From IMG/VR virus record IMGVR_UViG_3300050014_000823, positions 1 through 64,000 of that record: DNA of 64,000 nucleotides. The stretch is one strand, 5' to 3'. The notes beneath the pieces are model-generated. The model made no database searches. It was given only the letters and a program-made list of their open reading frames with translations, and was not told the origin of the DNA. Of the stretch, positions 1,380 to 32,238 are shown piece after piece; within the stretch, counting starts at the first letter, position 1; each line of letters begins with the position of its first letter. The position numbers and the translations under genes were made by a program.

Positions 1380-1452
1380 GCTTCCGTGACTGAATGGTTA
1401 AGGTGTCAGACTCTAAATCTGATTTGTGCAGGTTCGATTCCTGTCGGAAGTA
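1380..1452 (+). tRNA. amber suppressor tRNA, anticodon CTA (1413-1415)
   Basis: acceptor GCTTCCG/CGGAAGT, D loop with GG, anticodon stem TCAGA/TCTGA with loop CTCTAAA, T arm GCAGG-TTCGATT-CCTGT, discriminator A; no encoded CCA. Confidence 0.92.
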
Positions 1453-1473
1453 CAAAAATAATTGATAATTTGC

Positions 1474-6070: not shown

Positions 6071-6397
6071 ATGCCAGTTACACCGAGAGAGTATAGTAAG
6101 GAAACATTTTTAACTTTCTTACATAAGAATAATGTTTCCGATAGTATTGTGAATAAATTTATGCAGTTGCCGGAAAAGGTTACAAAAAGAGGTAAAGAAT
6201 TTAAATTGTTCATATCGTCAACATGGTACGATACTGGTAAGACATATTATAACTTCGAACTTAATTATTACTCAGAAGAACTTGTCGAGTATTTATTTAC
6301 CTATAAAGTATTTGACGATGTGGAGAGAAGTATTAATTTTTTGCTTTGTGAATTAATAAATAAACACTATATTGCAAAACCAGAACACTGTAAGTAA
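6071..6397 (+). CDS. hypothetical protein
   Basis: 108 aa ORF coupled to next gene. Confidence 0.65.
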   Translation: MPVTPREYSKETFLTFLHKNNVSDSIVNKFMQLPEKVTKRGKEFKLFISSTWYDTGKTYYNFELNYYSEELVEYLFTYKVFDDVERSINFLLCELINKHYIAKPEHCK

Positions 6398-7026
6398 TGA
6401 AAATTTGTATAATATCGGACACGCACAATAAGCACAAGCGTTTAGGTCAACTACCTATTGCTGATATGATTATTCATTGTGGTGACTTTACTTCAATAGG
6501 TCAAAGCCATGAGATTCAAAATTTCATGGGATGGTATAGTCATTTGCCGTTTAAATACAAACTTATTATTGCAGGAAATCACGATTGGTTGTTTGAAAGA
6601 AATCGTTTAATTGCAATGGAAAAAGTGCCTGAGAATGTAACATACTTAGAAGACTCAGGTATAGAAATCGAAGGTATTAAGTTCTGGGGAACTCCCGTAC
6701 AACTACCGTTTAATAATTGGGCATTTAATCGTCCGGAAGAAAAAATTAAACAGCATTGGGAAGCAATACCAGATGATACTGATGTGCTTATAACACACGG
6801 ACCACCAAACAGTATTTTTGACTGGAGCATATACGATAAAATTCACACAGGTTCACCATCGTTATATTTCGAAGTACTGAACAGAATTAAGCCTAAATTG
6901 CATTGCTTTGGTCACATCCACGGTGGCTATGGAATTAAGGTAATTGAGAATACTACCTTCATTAATGCCTCAAATCTCGATGAAGATTACATGTGTGTGA
7001 ATGCACCAGTTTTATTCGAAATATAA
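6397..7026 (+). CDS. metallophosphoesterase (MPPED/239FB-like)
   Basis: ISDTH, HCGDF, AGNHD, THGPP, FGHIH motifs. Confidence 0.92.
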   Translation: MKICIISDTHNKHKRLGQLPIADMIIHCGDFTSIGQSHEIQNFMGWYSHLPFKYKLIIAGNHDWLFERNRLIAMEKVPENVTYLEDSGIEIEGIKFWGTPVQLPFNNWAFNRPEEKIKQHWEAIPDDTDVLITHGPPNSIFDWSIYDKIHTGSPSLYFEVLNRIKPKLHCFGHIHGGYGIKVIENTTFINASNLDEDYMCVNAPVLFEI

Positions 7027-7051
7027 AAAGTCAGATGCGTCTGACTTTTTT
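7025..7051 (+). terminator. intrinsic terminator
   Basis: AAAAAGTCAGA-TGCG-TCTGACTTTTT. Confidence 0.8.
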
Positions 7052-7076
7052 GTTTTAATCCTGACTATTTATAGTT

Positions 7077-7697
7077 ATGAAATCAGTTAATCGTATTATT
7101 AAAGAGGAAGTCCGAAGATATTTAAAAGAATCTGACGAAGACATAGATTGGGATTTATACGAAAAACTCGATGATGTAAAGCGTGAGGTTCTTGATGGAT
7201 TTCTTAGAGACAGAGAAAAGGGAATAAAACAACAACCCTGGCAATTAGTGCCATTTGCAAGACTTAAGAAAATTTGGGAAGACTTTATGAACTACGGTGT
7301 TGTCAGAGATACCCGTGGCTTGGAAATGATTGAAGACATAATTCAGACCAACATTTTAAAACTTTACGTAAACACCGAATTATCGGGACATTCAGAAGCA
7401 GACCCGGCAGATGACTTTGAAGAATATGGTTATACCGACCAAGACAAAGAAGACTTTTATAGCTATATTGATAAAATCAGTGACTATGCTTTCAATGACT
7501 TTGGCGGCAGAAGATTAGGACTAACAACATTACTCGGTCAACTCAGAAAAGCACGTACACCCGAAGAAAAACTTCCAATTCTCGACCAAATATTAAACGT
7601 TGTTCACCAGACATCTGACTTAGCATCATACTTTGTAGAAGGTGGTTCATCGGCATTGAGCCAATTAAGCGGTAGTCCGTCTCAAGTACCTGCATAA
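7077..7697 (+). CDS. hypothetical protein with IIKEE N-terminus (candidate internal head protein)
   Basis: MKSVNRIIKEEVRRYLKES; CTATTTAT just upstream. Confidence 0.7.
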   Translation: MKSVNRIIKEEVRRYLKESDEDIDWDLYEKLDDVKREVLDGFLRDREKGIKQQPWQLVPFARLKKIWEDFMNYGVVRDTRGLEMIEDIIQTNILKLYVNTELSGHSEADPADDFEEYGYTDQDKEDFYSYIDKISDYAFNDFGGRRLGLTTLLGQLRKARTPEEKLPILDQILNVVHQTSDLASYFVEGGSSALSQLSGSPSQVPA

Positions 7698-7779
7698 AAA
7701 TATTAAATAAATCTTGTCTTTTCGAAAACTTCGTCCTATTTATGGTAAAAAATTACTTTTACATAAATTCACGATTTAC

Positions 7780-8103
7780 ATGAATATCAGCGAATTATTC
7801 GAAAAATTACAAGACGACATTTCCGAAGAACTTAATGGAGAATTAATATTAGAGGGTAATTGTATTATCTGGTCCTATGATTTGGACCGTGACGGTGCAA
7901 CACAAGATTTAGAGATTAGTGATGACGATGATGTTGAGTTTGACTTTGCATCAGCAACAAGTCCAGAAGAATTACTACAACAAGGATACGATGAGGATTT
8001 AATTGTAATTGAAGGTTGTATAGCACAGTTAGATGATTTTGCAGAATGGTCATATTCTGACCCAGAAATAGCAGACACCATAATTTCTTTTAAAATATTC
8101 TAA
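7780..8103 (+). CDS. very acidic hypothetical protein
   Basis: ATG 7780 more plausible than TTG 7714; D/E-rich. Confidence 0.7.
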   Translation: MNISELFEKLQDDISEELNGELILEGNCIIWSYDLDRDGATQDLEISDDDDVEFDFASATSPEELLQQGYDEDLIVIEGCIAQLDDFAEWSYSDPEIADTIISFKIF

Positions 8104-8156
8104 GTTTTCTGTAACATTCTCCTATAATTTTCGTATAATTGCGAAAAGATTTTATT

Positions 8157-9203
8157 ATGGGAGGCAAGGCACTAAACAAATATGGAGTTTTCACCGAAAG
8201 GAAAAACACAGACGAATTCCTGAGACTTGGAAAGTCAATTCAGAATACGCTTGAATATTATTTTTTGACACAGCGTGATACTGAACTTGAAACTCATGTT
8301 GTTCGTTGTTATCGTACTAAGGCAGACCACGGTGACTTGGATTTGCTTGTGAAGATAACACCAGACATGAATATCGATTACAAGAGTCTTATTCATCTTA
8401 TGTTCTTGCCAAAGGCTATTAACGCCAACGGTGGAGTATATTCATTCGATTACCAAGGATTTCAAGTTGACTTTATTCCTATTCCTGAAAGTAAGTGGGA
8501 GTCAGCTAAGATTTATTACAGCTATGACCCGCTTGGTAACATCATGGGAAAGACTTATCACAAGTTTAACCTGTCATATGGTTGGGAAGGTTTGTTCTAC
8601 AAGTACAGAAATGCTCATGGAACAAACAGTGAAAATATCCTGCTTACTAACGATGCCCGTAGAATCTTCGACTTCGGTGGATATGACTACGACAGGTACT
8701 TGAAGGGTTTCGATACACTTGAAGAAATCTTTAGGTTTGCTATTGACAGCAAGTACTTTGACTCAGAAATGTTTCAAATGGAAAACTTGAAGTCAATTGA
8801 CAAGAAAAGAAACCGTAAGAGAGGTTCATATCATTTGTTTTTGAATTACATTAAAGACAACGGTATTACAACAAGATACAGTTTCTGTGAAGATAAAGAT
8901 TGGTATCTTACTGCTATTGAAACTGCTTTTCCCGAATCTGACCTTGGTTTAAAAATAATTGGTTTGAGGCAGATAGATAAGAAAAACAAACTGATTGCAG
9001 ATAAATTCAATGGTGAACTTGTTATGGAGTGGATTCCCGGACTTAAAGGAAAAGAATTGGGTGTAATAATTGGCGATTATAAGCTATGGTGGGGAGAATA
9101 CTTTGAAGAATTTATTCTCAAGACTGCACCCAGTGACATTCGGGATAACTTCATAGGAGTTTACAATAAGATTATTTCAACAAATAAAAAACTAAATGGC
9201 TGA
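8157..9203 (+). CDS. Pol-beta-superfamily nucleotidyltransferase
   Basis: KADHGDLDLLV and FQVDFI motifs; ECF-type promoter 8110-8139. Confidence 0.7.
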   Translation: MGGKALNKYGVFTERKNTDEFLRLGKSIQNTLEYYFLTQRDTELETHVVRCYRTKADHGDLDLLVKITPDMNIDYKSLIHLMFLPKAINANGGVYSFDYQGFQVDFIPIPESKWESAKIYYSYDPLGNIMGKTYHKFNLSYGWEGLFYKYRNAHGTNSENILLTNDARRIFDFGGYDYDRYLKGFDTLEEIFRFAIDSKYFDSEMFQMENLKSIDKKRNRKRGSYHLFLNYIKDNGITTRYSFCEDKDWYLTAIETAFPESDLGLKIIGLRQIDKKNKLIADKFNGELVMEWIPGLKGKELGVIIGDYKLWWGEYFEEFILKTAPSDIRDNFIGVYNKIISTNKKLNG

Positions 9204-10086
9204 AATTAGCGCAGGTAAAGAACGTAATAACATTCTGAAAGTCGGAAGTAAGAATCTGAACTCAGAGAATTGGAAGGTTCATCACCCGTCTGGAAGACAT
9301 ATGTTCACCTGTGGCGAAAAGAAAGCTAAGTGGTATGTTGATAGAGGGTTAGCTGATATCATTGGTAAGAAGATGATTAAGCTAACCTTTATTCCAAGGG
9401 GTAATGGCTTTGAAGATAACGAAGAGTTTGGTCGTAGCATCCGGGAAGCAAAATGTGTTGTAACGGGCATAGATGAAGGTCTGCAGAGACATCATATTGT
9501 GCCGTATTGCTACCGCACGTACTTCCCGGAAATCTATAAGTCTAAGAATCATCATGACGTGGTATTAATTAATCACGAAATTCACTCTGATTATGAGCAA
9601 ATAGCAAATGATTATAAGGATGAAATTGCCAGAATCTACGGAGTGCCAACAATCGGTGAACTCAACTCACAATACACAGGAAGATTGCGGGAAGCAGGAA
9701 AAGAAAATTCTATCCTACTGAACGCAATTCACTCATTATTCAAGTGCTATGGTCGAGTAAGTGAGGAAGTTAAAGTTGAAAAACTTCACTTCATTGCGAA
9801 CCGTATTGGTCTTGATTACGAAGTTGTCTCAAACTACAACTACATGCAGCTTTACAAAATCTATCTTTACCTGCAGGTAGTACATGAGAAGGAAATTTAT
9901 GACTTCAAGGAAAAAAATCGGCAGTACTATGACCACGGATATCATGTGGTACAGAAACTTGACACTGAGGAAAAGATTGAGGAATTTGTGAAACTCTGGC
10001 GAAACCATTTTATTAACACAATGCATCCACAGTTTATGCCACAAGGATGGTCCGTGGATTTCCGAATTAAAACAAAAATTTCATAA
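9196..10086 (+). CDS. EXD2 C-terminal-like HNH-type domain protein
   Basis: TCGEKKAKWYVDRGL...CVVTG...RHHIVPYCYRTYFP..YKSKNHHDVVLI...PQGWSVD. Confidence 0.7.
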   Translation: MAEISAGKERNNILKVGSKNLNSENWKVHHPSGRHMFTCGEKKAKWYVDRGLADIIGKKMIKLTFIPRGNGFEDNEEFGRSIREAKCVVTGIDEGLQRHHIVPYCYRTYFPEIYKSKNHHDVVLINHEIHSDYEQIANDYKDEIARIYGVPTIGELNSQYTGRLREAGKENSILLNAIHSLFKCYGRVSEEVKVEKLHFIANRIGLDYEVVSNYNYMQLYKIYLYLQVVHEKEIYDFKEKNRQYYDHGYHVVQKLDTEEKIEEFVKLWRNHFINTMHPQFMPQGWSVDFRIKTKIS

Positions 10087-10143
10087 ATCTCTTGCACGTG
10101 TCAATTATTATAACTAATATTGTAATCTAAAAATAAATTCAAA

Positions 10144-10632
10144 ATGAAACTATACAAAGCGTTAAAACTGAGAAAAAAATTAGTAGGTGAAGTTGCTAAA
10201 CTGAAACAACAGATTCAAGCAAAAAACTCATTTACTGTGGGTTCGGTAGACCCAACAAAATTTAGTGTGGATAAAATCTATGCTGAACTCCAGGCAAAAA
10301 TCAACGATTTGGTCGGACTGAAATATGTCATTAACGAAGCTAATCGTCCGATTCAGGAACAGATTTACAGACTTTCAGAACTTAAAGCACTGCTTGTTTT
10401 CTGGAATGGCGTAAATGTTCAAGAAGGCGAACACATGGTTGGATATTCTGAGGCTAAGACCATTGAGTATGTTGCGCAGATTGACGAAATCAAACGCAAT
10501 CAGATGGTTGAAGACTTCCAGAAGAAAATCGATGTTATACAGGAAGAAATCGACACCTATAACTACACAACGGATGTTCCTTGGGGTGGTGTGAACGATG
10601 ACCTTCCAGAAGGACCAAACAAAGTGGAGTAA
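10144..10632 (+). CDS. DIP1984/septicolysin-like coiled-coil protein
   Basis: MKLYKALKLRKKL...LK..INEAN...IQEEIDTYNYTTDV pattern. Confidence 0.65.
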   Translation: MKLYKALKLRKKLVGEVAKLKQQIQAKNSFTVGSVDPTKFSVDKIYAELQAKINDLVGLKYVINEANRPIQEQIYRLSELKALLVFWNGVNVQEGEHMVGYSEAKTIEYVAQIDEIKRNQMVEDFQKKIDVIQEEIDTYNYTTDVPWGGVNDDLPEGPNKVE

Positions 10633-10640
10633 GAAAAACT

Positions 10641-10819
10641 GGGGTGTGTTATCGAGTAGCGAAGAAGCAGAAGTGAATATACGTTAGCCAAATGGCTTCA
10701 GAAACTGATAGTGATTTGAATGTTCAAAAGTCAGTATTCATGTTGTCAAAATTTAAGTCTCAAAACTTAAAACTCATTTAACTTTCATTTTTAACTTTTG
10801 ACCCAAAGATACACACTCC
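10641..10819 (+). ncRNA. putative structured RNA with 7-nt periodic TYA track
   Basis: ends pair (GGGGTGTGTTATC / GATACACACTCC); internal hairpins; TCA/TTA every 7 nt from 10724 to 10776. Confidence 0.6.
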
Positions 10820-10834
10820 TTTTATTTTAATTCA

Positions 10835-11899
10835 ATGGACAATATAAAATTCGACTATAACAACATACTTATTGTGCCAGAGGTAAATACAGATATAGAA
10901 AGCAGATATAAAGACATAGTTCTTCCGAACATGTTACCGCTTTTTACTGCCCCAATGGACACTGTTGTTGATTTAAGCAACATGAGATATTTTTTGGCAA
11001 ACGGTATTAATGTTACTTTACCGAGAACAATTACATATGATTCGTTTCTCGAAAACACTAAAGTAAACACATCAATATTTACCCAAAACCTATTCATTAG
11101 CTTGGGTTTACAGGATATGGAGAAGCACTATAAGACTAACTTCAAAGTATTCCATAGGGATGCACATATTCTCATAGATGTAGCCAACGGTCACATGCAA
11201 AAGATTGTGGATATTGCAAGAGAAGTACGTAGACTTAGACCAGACATAAAATTAATGGTTGGTAATATTGCTAATCCCGAAGCATATGCTTGGTACGCAA
11301 AAAACCATTGTGTTGACTTTATCCGTGTGGGTATCGGTAACGGCAATGGCTGTCTCACTACCAAACAATCGGGAGTCGGATATCCGGGAGCATCACTCAT
11401 TCAAGAAACCTATAAGGTAAAGCAAGATTTTATAAAAAATAATGTTGCTGGTAAAGTTCCTGCAATTGTTGCCGATGGTGGAATGAAAGATTATGTCGAT
11501 GTAATTAAAGCATTGGCATTGGGTGCTGATTATGTCATGATTGGCTCAATCTTCAACAAAGCATTCGAAAGTTGCGCAAAGAATTATGTGTTTTATATTC
11601 CGGTAAACGATAAGATTGCCAACTATTGTTTTGACCATAAAATACCTGTCATGAAACATTTCCGTGGCATGAGTACCAAGGAAGCACAAAAAGCTATGGG
11701 AAAGACCAGTTTTAAGACTTCTGAGGGCGTTACGAGATACAGGAAGGTAGAATATCGCCTACAAGGTTGGGTTGAAAATTTCGAGCATTACTTGCGAAAT
11801 GCAATGAGTTATGCTAATGCCCGGACATTAGAGGATTTTATTGGCAAAGCAGATGTTTGCCAAATTACAAAAGCAGCATATGATAGATTTAACAAATAG
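10835..11899 (+). CDS. guaC: GMP reductase / IMPDH-family protein
   Basis: TAPMDTV, IDVANGH, VGIGNGNGCLT, ADGG, ALGADYVMIG, FRGMST, SEG motifs. Confidence 0.85.
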   Translation: MDNIKFDYNNILIVPEVNTDIESRYKDIVLPNMLPLFTAPMDTVVDLSNMRYFLANGINVTLPRTITYDSFLENTKVNTSIFTQNLFISLGLQDMEKHYKTNFKVFHRDAHILIDVANGHMQKIVDIAREVRRLRPDIKLMVGNIANPEAYAWYAKNHCVDFIRVGIGNGNGCLTTKQSGVGYPGASLIQETYKVKQDFIKNNVAGKVPAIVADGGMKDYVDVIKALALGADYVMIGSIFNKAFESCAKNYVFYIPVNDKIANYCFDHKIPVMKHFRGMSTKEAQKAMGKTSFKTSEGVTRYRKVEYRLQGWVENFEHYLRNAMSYANARTLEDFIGKADVCQITKAAYDRFNK

Positions 11900-12242
11900 G
11901 TCAGTTGAAGATGTTAACGCACTTATACAAAAATATGCTTCTGTATTAGAACTGATTAAGCCACAACATCAGCCATCAATGGCAGTCATTCTCGAAGTCG
12001 GCATCAACCACGTTAAAGAAAATTATCCCATGTTAGAACTTGATTGGAAAGTCTGGTCAATTGTTCTACTTAAAAACAAATACTTAAGTGGTCATTTAAA
12101 GAAGGAATCCGATATTCCTAAGACAATTGCTGACTTCGTTCAGCATATTAAGGACAATTATGCTGATTACATTCAGCAACTTGGTATGTTTACAAATGAA
12201 TTTGACAGAGACTATGCATTTCTTTGCAGGTATATGAAATAA
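11880..12242 (+). CDS. hypothetical protein
   Basis: ORF overlapping the guaC stop. Confidence 0.6.
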   Translation: MIDLTNRSVEDVNALIQKYASVLELIKPQHQPSMAVILEVGINHVKENYPMLELDWKVWSIVLLKNKYLSGHLKKESDIPKTIADFVQHIKDNYADYIQQLGMFTNEFDRDYAFLCRYMK

Positions 12243-12297
12243 AAAATCGGTAGAAATCTTCCGATAATCTACCGATTTAGTTTATAATCTACCGATA

Positions 12298-12462
12298 TTA
12301 CGCCACTTGTAGTTCCTCCAATTGCGTCTCGTATTTTAACTTTAAAATTCTTAGGTTTTCTGTTTTCTTGTCGCTGATGCCATATTTTTCAAAATTGGCA
12401 ATTTTTGTTTCTAATTCTGCGATTTTATGTTCCAAAATCTCAATGTCTCTATCTTTAGCCAT
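12298..12462 (-). CDS. 54-aa coiled-coil protein (absent from ORF track)
   Basis: MAKDRDIEILEHKIAELETKIANFEK...; GTATTTAT on minus strand at 12495-12502. Confidence 0.6.
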   Translation of the reverse strand: MAKDRDIEILEHKIAELETKIANFEKYGISDKKTENLRILKLKYETQLEELQVA

Positions 12463-12559
12463 AGCTTTTAAGTTTAAGTGTATTTTATTTTCCTATAAAT
12501 ACTAAAGTGCTTGTATTTATACCCGACATTTAGTATATTTGTTGATTAAAATTTAAATT

Positions 12560-13349
12560 ATGGAAAAGTATATCAGATACAAAAGATTCGCAGAAACTCA
12601 CAATGAGAAAACATTACAAGACTTTTACGATAGGCTCGTTACAGAAGGTTGGGAAATCGTTTATTATAATGAAATCCGTCAACCAACAGGACAATTATCT
12701 GCAACTCCACAAGAAATAAACATTCATGTTATTGCTCTTTGTGGTAAAAGACAAGATAATAGTCTTAAGCCTGAAGTCTTATGAGCATTGATTCAGGTTA
12801 CTTAGTTGAAACTAAGACAGGCAAAAAGGGAAGAACCTATCATCGTGATAAGAAAGTAAATGGCAAAGTTGTCGTTTATATTGAAGGCGAAGCGGAAACA
12901 ACATTAAAAATGCTTTGTAATCCGGACAGCATAAAAATAATTGGATACGTAGATTAACTGCAATGGAAGAACTTAATTTAACACAGGGACACACATATCT
13001 TATCAGATATGGCGGTACTGAAACTCTTCATGAGATAAAAGTACTCACAATAACTGAAAAGGCATATCAAATCAGATGGCAGAGTGGTACAATTACATGG
13101 GAAATGAAAAGACGCATGGATAGTGATTATACTCTCTTAGAAGACATTAGCGATTTTCCAATATTTGTCGAAGGTACAACTATTACAACTACTGGAGAAC
13201 CACTTAAATTCGACATTAAATGGTCACAATGCCACGTATGTAAAGGATTTGGCACAGTTCCAGACCCAGGCAGCACCACAGGCAACAAACTATGCCCATT
13301 ATGTTTTGGTAGTAAAATGGTCTCAGATACGGTCCAAGTAAAGTCTTAA
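12560..13349 (+). other. three small CDS (12560-12784, 12781-12957, 12963-13349, the last with a DnaJ-type CxxCxGxG zinc finger)
   Basis: host-type promoter TTG-N20-TATATTTG at 12511-12541; CHVCKGFG and CPLCFGS. Confidence 0.65.
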
Positions 13350-13388
13350 TTAAATCTCAAACGTATTTATTGGAAATAGTGTGTCAAC

Positions 13389-14336
13389 ATGCTTTCAATA
13401 ATACAGATAATTAAGGAAGAACTACAGGATTTTTACGACTATGGCGATGAGCAGAGCATGGTCGATAGGTATTATGAAAGAAACATAAGTAACAAACCTG
13501 CAACCCAAACACCTAAAGAACAAATCAATGCTGAGTTAATTGGGTACGTCACAAAACAATGGGGTGCTAAATTAAACGAACCAATTCCTGTATACAAAAA
13601 TCCTTCACGACTAATTGGCTTTGCTGCCAATGCAAGGGGTGTTTTATTAGAAGATGGTACATTCTTTCTCGCTCCGACTCCAAGTGCAATGCATGACAAT
13701 ATACTGGACATGCTTGCTGAGAAAGGCATTGTTCCAATGGGAAGAATACACGAATATTTCAATTTTTATCCAGATGAATTTATTGCGGTACAAAGATTCG
13801 GCACAACCGATATGTTCAACCAATCAAGTGCATATGATAGGTTTCCTGAGTATTATCAACAAATCTTCGATAATGCTAACAGAAGACAACCATACGAATT
13901 TAAGGAAATTCAAGACGATAATGTAAACGAAATCGAAAGTCCATTAGACCCAAATTTTCAGATATCTAACATACCACAAGGATATGACGGTAATATACTT
14001 AACGAAATGAAAAACAAAGTAACTAAACTCATAGAAAGCGCAATTGGCGGGTTCATGGGTAATGCACAAATATCAATAACTCCCGTAGAACCTGATTTTC
14101 GCTCAGGTAAGAATCAACCATTAACATATAGTGTAATGTATGAGAAGGAAGTCAACGGAGAACTAATTGAAATCGAAGGCACTTTGACCCCACATCACAC
14201 AGGTCGAGCAGTAGAATATGGTTTTGAACCAGGATACTTTACAGATGGTAGTCCTGCATCACAATATTGGGATGAAAATTGGGAAGCAATTACCGATGAA
14301 ATTACCGACAAATTCTACGATAGCGGACTGAGATAA
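13389..14336 (+). CDS. multi-module IIKEE protein (candidate internal head protein)
   Basis: MLSIIQIIKEEL; GTATTTAT at 13363; domain shared with 28086 protein. Confidence 0.7.
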   Translation: MLSIIQIIKEELQDFYDYGDEQSMVDRYYERNISNKPATQTPKEQINAELIGYVTKQWGAKLNEPIPVYKNPSRLIGFAANARGVLLEDGTFFLAPTPSAMHDNILDMLAEKGIVPMGRIHEYFNFYPDEFIAVQRFGTTDMFNQSSAYDRFPEYYQQIFDNANRRQPYEFKEIQDDNVNEIESPLDPNFQISNIPQGYDGNILNEMKNKVTKLIESAIGGFMGNAQISITPVEPDFRSGKNQPLTYSVMYEKEVNGELIEIEGTLTPHHTGRAVEYGFEPGYFTDGSPASQYWDENWEAITDEITDKFYDSGLR

Positions 14337-32181: not shown

Positions 32182-32238
32182 TGGGTGTTAGCGCAGTGGT
32201 AGAGCGAAATGTCGGGGGTTCGATTCCCTCACACCCTA
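32182..32238 (+). ncRNA. tRNA-like RNA lacking the anticodon arm
   Basis: GGGTGT/ACACCC acceptor, D arm GCGC-AGTGGTA-GAGC, only GAAATGTC before T arm GGGGG-TTCGATT-CCCTC. Confidence 0.75.

Follow-up and report, generated by a model that had tools for sequence, protein, structure and literature searches.

Directly downstream of a gene for a small protein with a predicted helical fold, this giant phage encodes a folded RNA of roughly 180 nt that carries a strict 7-nt repeat, is represented in RNA libraries, and accompanies the same gene family in phages, plasmids and bacteria. No Rfam family matches it and no paper in the literature library we searched mentions it. The analysis started from a 64,000-nt window (positions 1 to 64,000 of IMG/VR record IMGVR_UViG_3300050014_000823), and the element occupies window positions 10641-10829 on the + strand. 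An obligate gene-RNA pair is well supported, whereas binding of the protein to the repeat track is inferred. The region comprises the following features:

10144-10632 (+), gene for a 162-aa DIP1984/DUF6847-like protein, predicted to be a three-helix bundle with a beta hairpin, a basic N-terminal helix and an acidic disordered tail
10633-10640 (+), short spacer between the stop codon and the closing helix, ending in the conserved ACU
10641-10653 (+), 5' strand of the closing helix: P1 (10641-10649), bulged U10650, and P1b (10651-10653)
10654-10658 (+), near-invariant GAGUA box directly after the closing helix
10654-10802 (no strand information), stretch recovered as isolated short contigs from RNA libraries
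10663-10677 (+), 5' strand of helix P2, pairing with 10784-10799
10686-10697 (+), hairpin P3 (AGCC/GGCU), in a stretch whose length and sequence vary between relatives
10707-10714 (+), invariant GAUAGNGA box
10718-10740 (+), conserved hairpin P4, in which GAAU (10718-10721) pairs with AUUC (10736-10739) and the loop begins GUUCAAAA, resembling a tRNA T loop
10746-10780 (+), heptad track of five phase-locked units: UCAAAAU, UUAAGUC, UCAAAAC, UUAAAAC, UCAUUUA
10784-10799 (+), 3' strand of helix P2
10808-10819 (+), 3' strand of closing helix P1b/P1
10820-10829 (+), U tract (UUUUAUUUUA) directly after the closing helix, the likely intrinsic termination site and 3' end
10835-11899 (+), next gene (IMPDH/GMP-reductase-like; Pfam IMPDH, E 1e-35), with its ATG 15 nt after the closing helix

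The initial annotation had described a stem-closed RNA with two small internal hairpins and TCA/TTA triplets at near-regular 7-nt spacing, and this observation is confirmed by the sequence. GGGGTGTGTTATC (10641-10653) pairs with GATACACACTCC (10808-10819) through 12 pairs, including one G-U, with U10650 bulged, and TTTTATTTTA follows the stem. The triplets are at 10724, 10731, 10738, 10746, 10753, 10760, 10767 and 10774. A few details required correction. The stem starts 8 nt, rather than 9 nt, after the TAA that ends at 10632. Only the last five triplets (10746-10780) form the conserved track; the first three lie in the conserved GAAUGUUCAA...AUUCA hairpin region. Of the two small hairpins, AGCC/GGCU is in the variable stretch, where other members, read by eye, have hairpins of other sequence or a short stretch without one, and TCAG/CTGA is not conserved in relatives.

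Folding energy alone would not establish the structure: RNAfold retains the closing stem in both the minimum-energy and centroid structures, but the z-score for the whole region is only -1.8. Stronger support comes from comparison with homologs, the check that had been proposed for the observation. The stem and track are conserved in 78 distinct homologous sequences, with compensatory changes in the stems and no indel within the track. In a first set of 12 sequences, 10 of 12 pairs of the closing helix show compensatory changes. In the 78 sequences P1 is 96% canonical and 7 of 8 pairs show double changes, and G-U occurs 56 times against 3 for A-C, which places the RNA on the + strand. For P2, the column pair at 10664/10798 is A-U in 32 sequences and G-C in 29, and P2a and P2b exceed all 300 shuffles for canonical fraction and double changes. 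P4 is 94-97% canonical but hardly varies, so covariation could not be assessed. In the GAUAGNGA box G, A, U, G and A are invariant in the 78 sequences, and the UUCUUUU-type tail is conserved in 90% or more of sequences. Pairs were counted with anchor-based scripts. Consensus folding with RNAalifold found only 6 pairs in the 78 sequences and none in 11 bacterial sequences, for which MAFFT misplaced the anchors.

The family consensus of the track is U-H-A-A-R-a-n four times, followed by UCAUUU. U is present in 76-78 of 78 sequences and AA in 70-78 of 78, at exact 7-nt spacing and with no indels in the four core heptads. Positions 1, 3, 4 and 5 of each heptad are fixed and positions 2, 6 and 7 are free, a pattern that suggests recognition by a protein. 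Lag-7 autocorrelation is 0.45, the maximum. The run of four U[CUA]AAR heptads is unique in the 299-kb genome, which has one copy of the element, and a five-unit U-N-A run at period 7 was reached by 2 of 500 dinucleotide shuffles. The track behaves as single-stranded: the only plausible internal pairing (UUAAG/CUUAA) forms six pairs in the window, but across the 78 sequences it is 52% canonical, equal to the shuffle mean.

Several other identities were considered, and a known RNA family, a tRNA or tmRNA and a coding sequence were rejected. Rfam 15 covariance models gave no match in the window at the gathering score apart from two tRNAs, only chance-level hits (E above 4) in 10560-10900 at permissive thresholds, and none in six bacterial or bacterial-like loci. 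ARAGORN calls no tRNA or tmRNA at the element. A tRNA-like reading, with the closing helix as acceptor stem and a T-loop-like GUUCAA, is countered by the lack of a conserved G-U at the third pair and by a U tract rather than CCA after the helix. There is no + strand ORF of 40 aa or more in 10633-10834, and a 7-nt period cannot keep a reading frame. A sigma-70 promoter scan found nothing at the element. A consensus terminator scan also found none, because the 12-bp helix, although followed by a U tract, encloses 155 nt.

All 111 phage or metagenome loci with a homologous gene and at least 230 nt of 3' flank carry the element on the same strand, with a median of 7 nt after the stop codon. Among 78 distinct loci the spacer between stop codon and P1 is mostly 4-11 nt (median 7), and the distance from the end of P1 to the next ATG has a median of 16 nt. 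However, most of the 111 loci belong to one syntenic phage clade, so that their count overstates independence; independent support comes from about 17 distant or bacterial loci, several of them read by eye. A DNA-pattern search that ignored the protein gave 108 matches, of which only 13 were true elements, and in the six loci not already found through the protein search the gene lies just upstream. The pair survives where neighbors differ: the IMPDH-like, HNH-like or nucleotidyltransferase genes are lost or displaced, and insertions fall after the RNA, not between gene and RNA. In the GenBank phage set only one phage, uncultured and of 595 kb, has the gene. Five hits in genome bins are to bins of very different phyla and are probably mis-binned phage contigs.

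Most relatives with proteins only 30-41% identical, in unrelated gene contexts, keep a closing helix of different sequence plus the period-7 track (loci L208, L209, L210, L219, L222, and L228, which is LR756511). Two further loci depart from this pattern: L221, in a bacterial-like context, has the closing helix but no significant period-7 run, and L223, a distant homolog, has no 3' gap at all. A plasmid search with a phage-type protein found nothing, and bacterial members were instead reached through the literature. All 11 of 11 bona fide bacterial DIP1984 ("septicolysin") loci examined, from five phyla, have the design, each with a different P1. They share a 5-bp P2 that is canonical in all, with compensatory changes at every position, and a conserved (G/A)GC+G / GA junction. 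A related G-N-G-Y-R-Y element occupies the place of the GAGUA box in the bacterial relatives, and some GC-rich ones have a tRNA T-arm-like hairpin (GGGUUCGAYYCCC) in their interior, noted by eye. Lag 7 is the autocorrelation maximum in both the bacterial and the phage sets.

Four metatranscriptomes contain contigs of 153-161 nt (one identical, three about 91% identical) that cover only the 10654-10802 stretch, with zero depth over 9800-10615 and 10820-11300. Apparent adaptor sequence flanks one contig. The contigs carry no strand information and no exact ends, and DNA carry-over in metatranscriptomes cannot be formally excluded. The absence of flanking coding sequence bears on a fourth and very unlikely alternative, that the element is an elaborate 3' untranslated region or terminator that only stabilizes the mRNA, or a DNA-level signal (promoter, origin, recombination site), with no protein partner. 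The closing helix with its U tract and the A/T-rich composition are compatible with this, and Acinetobacter plasmid modules are noted for recombination sites. However, the invariant boxes and the invariant U/AA register in an unpaired stretch are not needed for a terminator, the G-U excess shows selection on one RNA strand, and the period is 7 rather than the 10-11 expected for DNA-face signals.

The protein is a distant branch of the DIP1984 family rather than a scored member. NCBIfam NF038048 matches positions 1-148 of 149 (E 5e-8), but at 33.2 bits against a cut-off of 70, and Pfam DUF6847 (PF20935) scores 19.2 bits against 27 (E 1e-3); 45 of 88 relatives match PF20935 at E 1e-3 or better. 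The AF2 model is confident (pLDDT 92.9) and elongated, with a lysine-rich first helix, and the family has invariant polar residues (N28, K60, E79, Q133, N140). Foldseek ranks 3kdq_A and 3kdq_C first (TM 0.64-0.79, probability 1.00), with TM 0.75-0.79 for the only convincing match, the DIP1984-type crystal structure 3KDQ of unknown function, which has three long helices with a beta hairpin; all other hits have TM below 0.4. A profile of relatives hits 3kdq over its full length at E 1e-3. No known RNA-binding domain was detected, the fold has no functional annotation, and PHROGs and PADLOC gave no hit for the protein.

Overall, the interpretation in the initial annotation is partly supported. 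It had proposed an undescribed protein-ncRNA pair, with a DIP1984-like protein forming an oligomeric ring or filament that binds the single-stranded track cooperatively in a TRAP-like or type III toxin-antitoxin-like manner. The DIP1984-like assignment, the pairing at the level of genes and the single-stranded track hold, but membership of the TRAP or type III toxin-antitoxin families is not supported. We suggest, with about even confidence, that the RNA is the dedicated partner of the gene just upstream. It is probably transcribed with that gene, since no promoter-like site lies before it, and in this view would end at its own closing helix plus U tract and accumulate as a discrete RNA. Two stacked helices (P1/P1b and P2), with a GAGUA-containing internal loop between them, and a T-loop-like hairpin would hold out the single-stranded array of five U-N-A-A-R-n-n units. 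Most likely, several copies of the elongated protein would bind side by side, one per heptad, nucleated by the structured part, giving a ribonucleoprotein. Given that in the giant-phage clade the stop codon lies 7 nt before P1 and the next start codon about 16 nt after it, the same fold or complex may also set how much transcription or translation passes into the next gene. The analysis itself demonstrates the RNA, its helices, its periodic track, its presence in RNA libraries and its obligate linkage to the gene family; that the protein is the ligand, that it forms an oligomer with one copy per heptad, that transcription terminates at the U tract, and any regulatory output or toxicity are inferences.

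A more far-reaching and still tentative possibility, which we consider somewhat less likely than not, is that DIP1984/DUF6847 proteins are a widespread, unrecognized class of RNA-binding proteins, each encoded with its own structured heptad-repeat RNA, forming a self-contained module that moves among giant phages, plasmids and chromosomes. This would be a new kind of ribonucleoprotein system (with an addiction, defense, counter-defense or RNA-metabolism function), unrelated to TRAP, HutP, CsrA-type sponges or type III toxin-antitoxins. It would give a first functional handle on a family of more than 1,200 sequence clusters that has a solved structure but no known role and is listed as "septicolysin" on clinical Acinetobacter plasmids. 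The element also adds to giant phages and bacteria a structured RNA family, seen in RNA libraries, that is absent from Rfam. A strict 7-nt register in an unpaired strand is a rare signature of multi-copy protein recognition of RNA, and as the design appears on small plasmids of cultivable bacteria, the hypothesis is testable without culturing the giant phage; plasmid homologs of the protein occur in Acinetobacter and Picosynechococcus. If the closing helix couples the complex to read-through or re-initiation, it would be a new way for phages to wire gene expression.

Among known systems, the C. diphtheriae (Corynebacterium diphtheriae) DIP1984-type protein of PDB 3KDQ has the same fold as the model, and it and the plasmid-borne septicolysin of Acinetobacter belong to the same family by profile, although the sequence is only distantly related. 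The Acinetobacter gene also has a closed 3' element; the papers found list septicolysin as an annotated plasmid gene and none describes an RNA.

Type III toxin-antitoxin systems (ToxIN, CptIN, TenpIN) likewise combine a protein gene with a dedicated repeat-bearing RNA on mobile elements. An addiction or defense module of this type, in which the RNA holds a harmful protein inactive, is therefore a possible but improbable alternative. The sporadic distribution of the pair, rich in mobile elements, is compatible with it: phages, small Acinetobacter plasmids that also carry BrnT/A and RelE/ParE systems, and only 2 of 401 Bacteroidota genomes. However, type III repeats are tandem units of about 34-36 nt cut by the toxin, the RNA gene comes first with a terminator between it and the toxin gene, and the toxin is an endoribonuclease of a beta-rich fold. 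Here the repeats are 7 nt and degenerate, the RNA follows the gene, and the predicted helical bundle has no nuclease motif or fold match and no PADLOC hit.

TRAP and the trp leader share repeated short motifs at fixed spacing, read by an oligomer, in an RNA that decides terminator formation (PMC2425495). TRAP is an 11-mer beta-sheet ring activated by tryptophan that reads eleven (G/U)AG triplets separated by 2-3 nt. The track described here has five U-N-A-A-R units at period 7, the protein model is a helical bundle, and no TRAP hit appears in fold searches of the PDB and Swiss-Prot.

The closest design analogs are the phage T4 gene 32 operator and HutP with its terminator RNA. In the former, a folded nucleation element sits next to an unstructured A/U-rich stretch with several UUAAA/UAAA repeats that is bound cooperatively (PMC535899). 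Gp32 covers about 7 nt per monomer. This resemblance, together with the apparent abundance of the RNA relative to its neighbors, raises the doubtful possibility that the RNA is a decoy or sponge for a different single-strand-binding protein, such as the phage's own gp32-type SSB or a host RNA-binding or defense protein, and is merely co-inherited with the DIP1984-like gene. This does not explain why the RNA remains with this one gene in chromosomes, plasmids and phages that share no other genes. Track composition also changes with lineage, A/U-rich in phages and C/A-rich in actinobacteria, which better fits a co-evolving dedicated partner than one universal host factor. The gp32 operator lies in the 5' leader and covers the gene's own ribosome-binding site, whereas here the track lies 55 nt or more upstream of the next ATG, within an RNA that is closed by a helix, ends in a U tract and is 3' of the linked gene. 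Gp32 is an SSB, with an OB fold, rather than a DIP1984-type protein.

In the hut terminator RNA of Bacillus subtilis, recognition triplets recur every 7 nt (cleavages at U498, U505 and U512) and are read by an oligomer, one motif per subunit (PMC2425495). HutP is a regulator of about 150 aa, and its gene lies directly upstream of the structured terminator RNA. The present element similarly has motifs at 7-nt spacing in an RNA directly 3' of the gene that ends in a helix plus U tract. A purely cis-acting attenuator of this type is accordingly an alternative, although an unlikely one: the upstream protein, or a terminating ribosome 7 nt from P1, would prevent or promote formation of the P1 and U-tract terminator and so control read-through, and the abundant RNA would be only the terminated by-product. 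The U tract directly after the closing helix and the tight spacing to the stop codon and next ATG are consistent with this. However, the downstream gene is not conserved, and in loci L221, L225, L227, L235 and L240 the next annotated gene is convergent or far away, leaving nothing to read through into. Most bacterial copies show no clear U tract after the 3' strand of P1 in the tails inspected, and terminated leader fragments are not usually the only part of an operon recovered in metatranscriptomes. HutP is an alpha/beta hexamer that reads NAG motifs in two groups of three, whereas the protein described here is a predicted helical bundle with no Pfam or NCBIfam hit to HutP, and its putative target is a single run of five U-N-A-A-R units inside a large closed multi-helix RNA that appears to accumulate.

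The window lies within a 299-kb virus record that is about 91% complete and whose DNA resembles the Prevotella Lak megaphages only weakly. The initial annotation described a closing helix, a T tract and regularly spaced TCA/TTA triplets after a DIP1984-like gene. That observation held, and every detail listed is present in the 202-nt gap that follows the gene. The features are:

10144-10632 (+), ORF encoding the DIP1984-like protein, ending in TAA
10641-10653 (+), GGGGUGUGUUAUC, 5' strand of the closing helix, with U10650 bulged
10724, 10731, 10738, 10746, 10753, 10760, 10767 and 10774 (+), TCA/TTA triplets
10808-10819 (+), GAUACACACUCC, 3' strand of the closing helix, giving 12 pairs of which one is G-U
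directly after the helix (+), UUUUAUUUUA
10835 (+), start of the next ORF, IMPDH/GMP-reductase-like

RNAfold keeps the closing helix, but the overall energy is only 1.8 SD below shuffles on the + strand and 1.3 SD on the - strand, so a single-sequence fold proves little. The run of four U[CUA]AAR heptads is unique in the genome, and a five-unit U-N-A run at period 7 was reached by 2 of 500 dinucleotide shuffles.

To evaluate conservation, we used protein-guided searches, which recovered 18 viral and 80 metagenome loci that are 47-81% identical. An nhmmer profile of the 3' flank found the element in all 111 loci that have the gene and at least 230 nt of flank, always on the same strand and directly after the gene. 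The two loci without it end within 3 nt of the gene. Conversely, a DNA pattern derived from the RNA alone gave 108 matches in the viral collection, of which 13 were true elements, and in the six that were new loci the gene lies just upstream. The phage's own genome has one copy.

Most of these loci share a syntenic block, so the large count is not independent evidence. In the window this conserved block of the giant-phage clade spans 6397-14336 (+) and encodes a metallophosphatase, two ORFs, a 354-aa pol-beta-type nucleotidyltransferase (HGDLDLLV motif; PHROG "DNA polymerase"), a 296-aa ORF with HNH-like histidines and no family hit, the DIP1984-like gene with its RNA, the IMPDH/GMP-reductase-like gene, and further ORFs. 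The mix hints at nucleotide or RNA metabolism. Within the block, however, the neighbors come and go and insertions fall after the RNA; the gene-RNA junction is never broken. Contigs carrying this phage-type pair, namely a 362,763-bp contig in a "Paceibacterota" bin (locus L214, JBAZIW010000001.1) and loci L215-L218, are filed in genome bins of five unrelated phyla. These are probably giant-phage contigs that were misbinned as bacteria.

The window also encodes a tRNA with anticodon CUA at 1380-1453 (+), which would read the amber codon UAG (labeled tRNA-Pyl by ARAGORN; Rfam tRNA, 62.9 bits). This may mean that UAG is read as a residue at some stage of the phage cycle. Of 78 homologous DIP1984-like genes, 73 end in TAA, 3 in TGA and 2 in TAG. 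A short (57 nt) tRNA-like match at 32182-32238 (+) scored 36.9 bits against the Rfam tRNA model but was not called by ARAGORN.

The structure of the element was evaluated using an alignment of 78 distinct sequences (A4). The closing helix P1 is 96% canonical, and 7 of its 8 pairs show double (compensatory) changes. G-U occurs 56 times versus 3 times for A-C, which fixes the + strand as the RNA. Helices P1b, P2a and P2b exceed all 300 column shuffles in both canonical fraction and double changes. The hairpin P4 (GAAU/AUUC) is conserved but too invariant to test. Other invariant boxes are GAGUA after P1b, GAUAGNGA, and GAAUGUUCAA. No Rfam family matches.

Between P4 and the 3' strand of P2 lie four heptads. 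Position 1 is U (76-78 of 78), position 2 is A, C or U, positions 3-4 are AA (70-78 of 78), position 5 is a purine and position 6 is mostly A. UCAUUU follows, and no insertion or deletion occurs inside the four core heptads. The only plausible pairing inside the track is at shuffle level. Fixed letters at fixed phase with free letters between is the pattern expected for repeated protein contacts, and is not the pattern of base-pairing with a target RNA.

More distantly related loci were found by tracing cluster representatives that are 30-41% identical to the protein to their contigs, along with one published 595-kb uncultured phage (LR756511.1, locus L228). Six of these loci (L208, L209, L210, L219, L222 and L228) lie in unrelated gene neighborhoods, for example with tRNA genes on both sides (L208), with DNA methylases and a tRNA synthetase (L219), or with sigma factors downstream (L222). 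In L208, tRNA-Gln (840-912) directly precedes and tRNA-Glu (1571-1644) directly follows the gene-RNA pair. In each of the six, a noncoding stretch follows the gene. In five it is closed by a helix of different sequence (for example AGAACUCUA/UAGAGUUCU followed by U8), mostly followed by a U tract; the closing helix of L219 is weak. Inside is a U-N-A run at period 7 that usually ends UCAAAAC UCAU. The run is significant against shuffles in L208, L209, L219 and L222 and borderline in L210, whereas L228 was read by eye. The covariance model built from A4 detects L210 (protein 30% identical) at an E value of 3e-4. In L228, a 28-codon lysine-rich ORF (MAKGKTPKKEPKK..., about 1640-1725) sits between the DIP1984-like gene, which here ends in TAG, and the RNA element. 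This is the only locus seen with something inserted between gene and RNA. Another locus, L221, in a bacterial-like context, has the closing helix but no significant period-7 run, and one homologue (L223) has no gap at all, so the pair is general but not universal.

For bacterial family members, the literature led us to "septicolysin" genes on Acinetobacter baumannii plasmids, which score 165 bits on the DIP1984 model. In the papers found, the name appears as an annotation label in plasmid gene lists. In one such plasmid (CP035673, locus L225, 4770-9838) the gene and its 3' element lie among BrnT/BrnA and RelE/ParE toxin-antitoxin genes, and the same 153-aa protein is 99% or more identical in 325 plasmid records. 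We examined eleven loci, from plasmids of Acinetobacter, Psychrobacter, Paracoccus, Enterococcus and Picosynechococcus, two Mycobacteriaceae plasmids, two Streptomycetaceae plasmids and two Bacteroidota genomes. The family is sporadic, as only 2 of 401 sampled Bacteroidota genomes score above the cut-off.

All eleven have an element of 140-194 nt that begins 11-37 nt after the stop, where measured. P1 is different in every case, with 6-11 contiguous pairs in nine and an interruption by a bulge or mismatch in two. It is followed by (G/A)GC + G, a 5-bp P2 that is canonical in all eleven and shows compensatory changes at all five positions, the interior, the P2 3' strand, GA (GG in one), and P1'. 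The Acinetobacter element folds 2.9 SD better than shuffles. In the presumed track region, lag 7 is the autocorrelation maximum in the bacterial set (0.36 versus about 0.25), as in the phage set (0.45), and lag 14 is also elevated in both. Several of these bacterial elements were read partly by eye, and alignment with MAFFT followed by RNAalifold failed on them, so this extension is best considered provisional. Rfam has nothing for these elements either, in the six bacterial or bacterial-like loci scanned.

In seven bacterial loci (L233, L227 and L235-L239) a G-run box (GAGGGYGGG, 3-4 nt, GGGG) follows the 3' strand of the closing helix within about 10 nt. This box could be part of the RNA, for example a G-quadruplex-like element, but it was not seen in the Acinetobacter, Psychrobacter, Enterococcus or L234 copies, nor in the phage copies viewed. 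GC-rich bacterial copies (L233 at 2040-2060, and the corresponding stretch of L227 and L235-L237) contain a hairpin that matches the tRNA T arm almost exactly (GGGUUCGAYYCCC). The phage P4 loop GUUCAAR resembles a T loop. This may be a shared tertiary or recognition module. In L233, tRNA-Gly and tRNA-Val (1211-1422) lie just before the gene-RNA pair.

Evidence regarding expression comes from metatranscriptomes. A peat metatranscriptome holds 63% of the sampled words of the 211-nt element but only 8% of those of a 1.5-kb stretch around it. Comparison of four RNA runs with positions 9800-11300 gave one contig per run, 153-161 nt long in total. One is identical to the window and three are about 91% identical. 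They cover 10654/10671 to 10791/10802, with zero depth on both flanking genes. One contig is flanked by what appear to be sequencing-adaptor letters, and another runs on into the P1 3' strand. The contigs have no strand, their ends are blurred by library construction, and DNA carry-over cannot be formally excluded, but the pattern fits a discrete RNA that is much more abundant than the neighboring mRNAs.

The predicted structure of the protein (AF2, pLDDT 92.9) has helices at 3-28, 42-88 and 115-142, a beta hairpin at 95-109 and a disordered acidic tail. The only real structural match is 3KDQ, a protein of unknown function; prefoldin-beta-like coiled coils appear at low scores. The family has 1,255 clusters at an E value of 1e-3 or better, and its invariant residues are polar (N28, K60, E79, Q133 and N140). 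No enzyme, nuclease, defense or RNA-binding domain was detected in the domain and family searches.

The initial annotation proposed an undescribed protein-ncRNA pair in which an oligomeric ring or filament of the upstream protein binds the periodic track cooperatively, in the manner of TRAP or a type III toxin-antitoxin system. This interpretation is partly supported. The analysis establishes an RNA with covarying helices and a phase-locked unpaired heptad array that is tied to this gene family across very different replicons. That the protein is its ligand is an inference, as is the arrangement we envisage, in which several elongated monomers would lie side by side on successive heptads, nucleated by the structured core. 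There are precedents for such a design. HutP reads triplets 7 nt apart in a terminator RNA (PMC2425495). This RNA follows the hutP gene. T4 gp32 reads UUAAA/UAAA repeats beside a pseudoknot (PMC535899).

In the giant-phage clade the stop codon lies a median of 7 nt before P1 and the next ATG about 16 nt after it. A terminating ribosome would overlap the foot of P1, and the helix would bring the two ORFs close together, making an effect on read-through or re-initiation plausible there. This effect cannot be the general role, because several bacterial loci have a convergent or distant next gene. Alternatively, the RNA could be a pure attenuator, a decoy for another protein, part of a type III-like addiction module, or a plain terminator or DNA signal.

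We found no paper linking DIP1984, DUF6847 or septicolysin to an RNA. Membership of the element in the TRAP, HutP, gp32-operator or type III systems is not supported, as the defining features tested were not found, apart from the 7-nt spacing and the gene-then-RNA order that it shares with HutP. In its inferred mode of action, it is most like systems in which an oligomer reads periodic motifs. If the protein-RNA complex has a function of its own, however, it would be a new kind of module.
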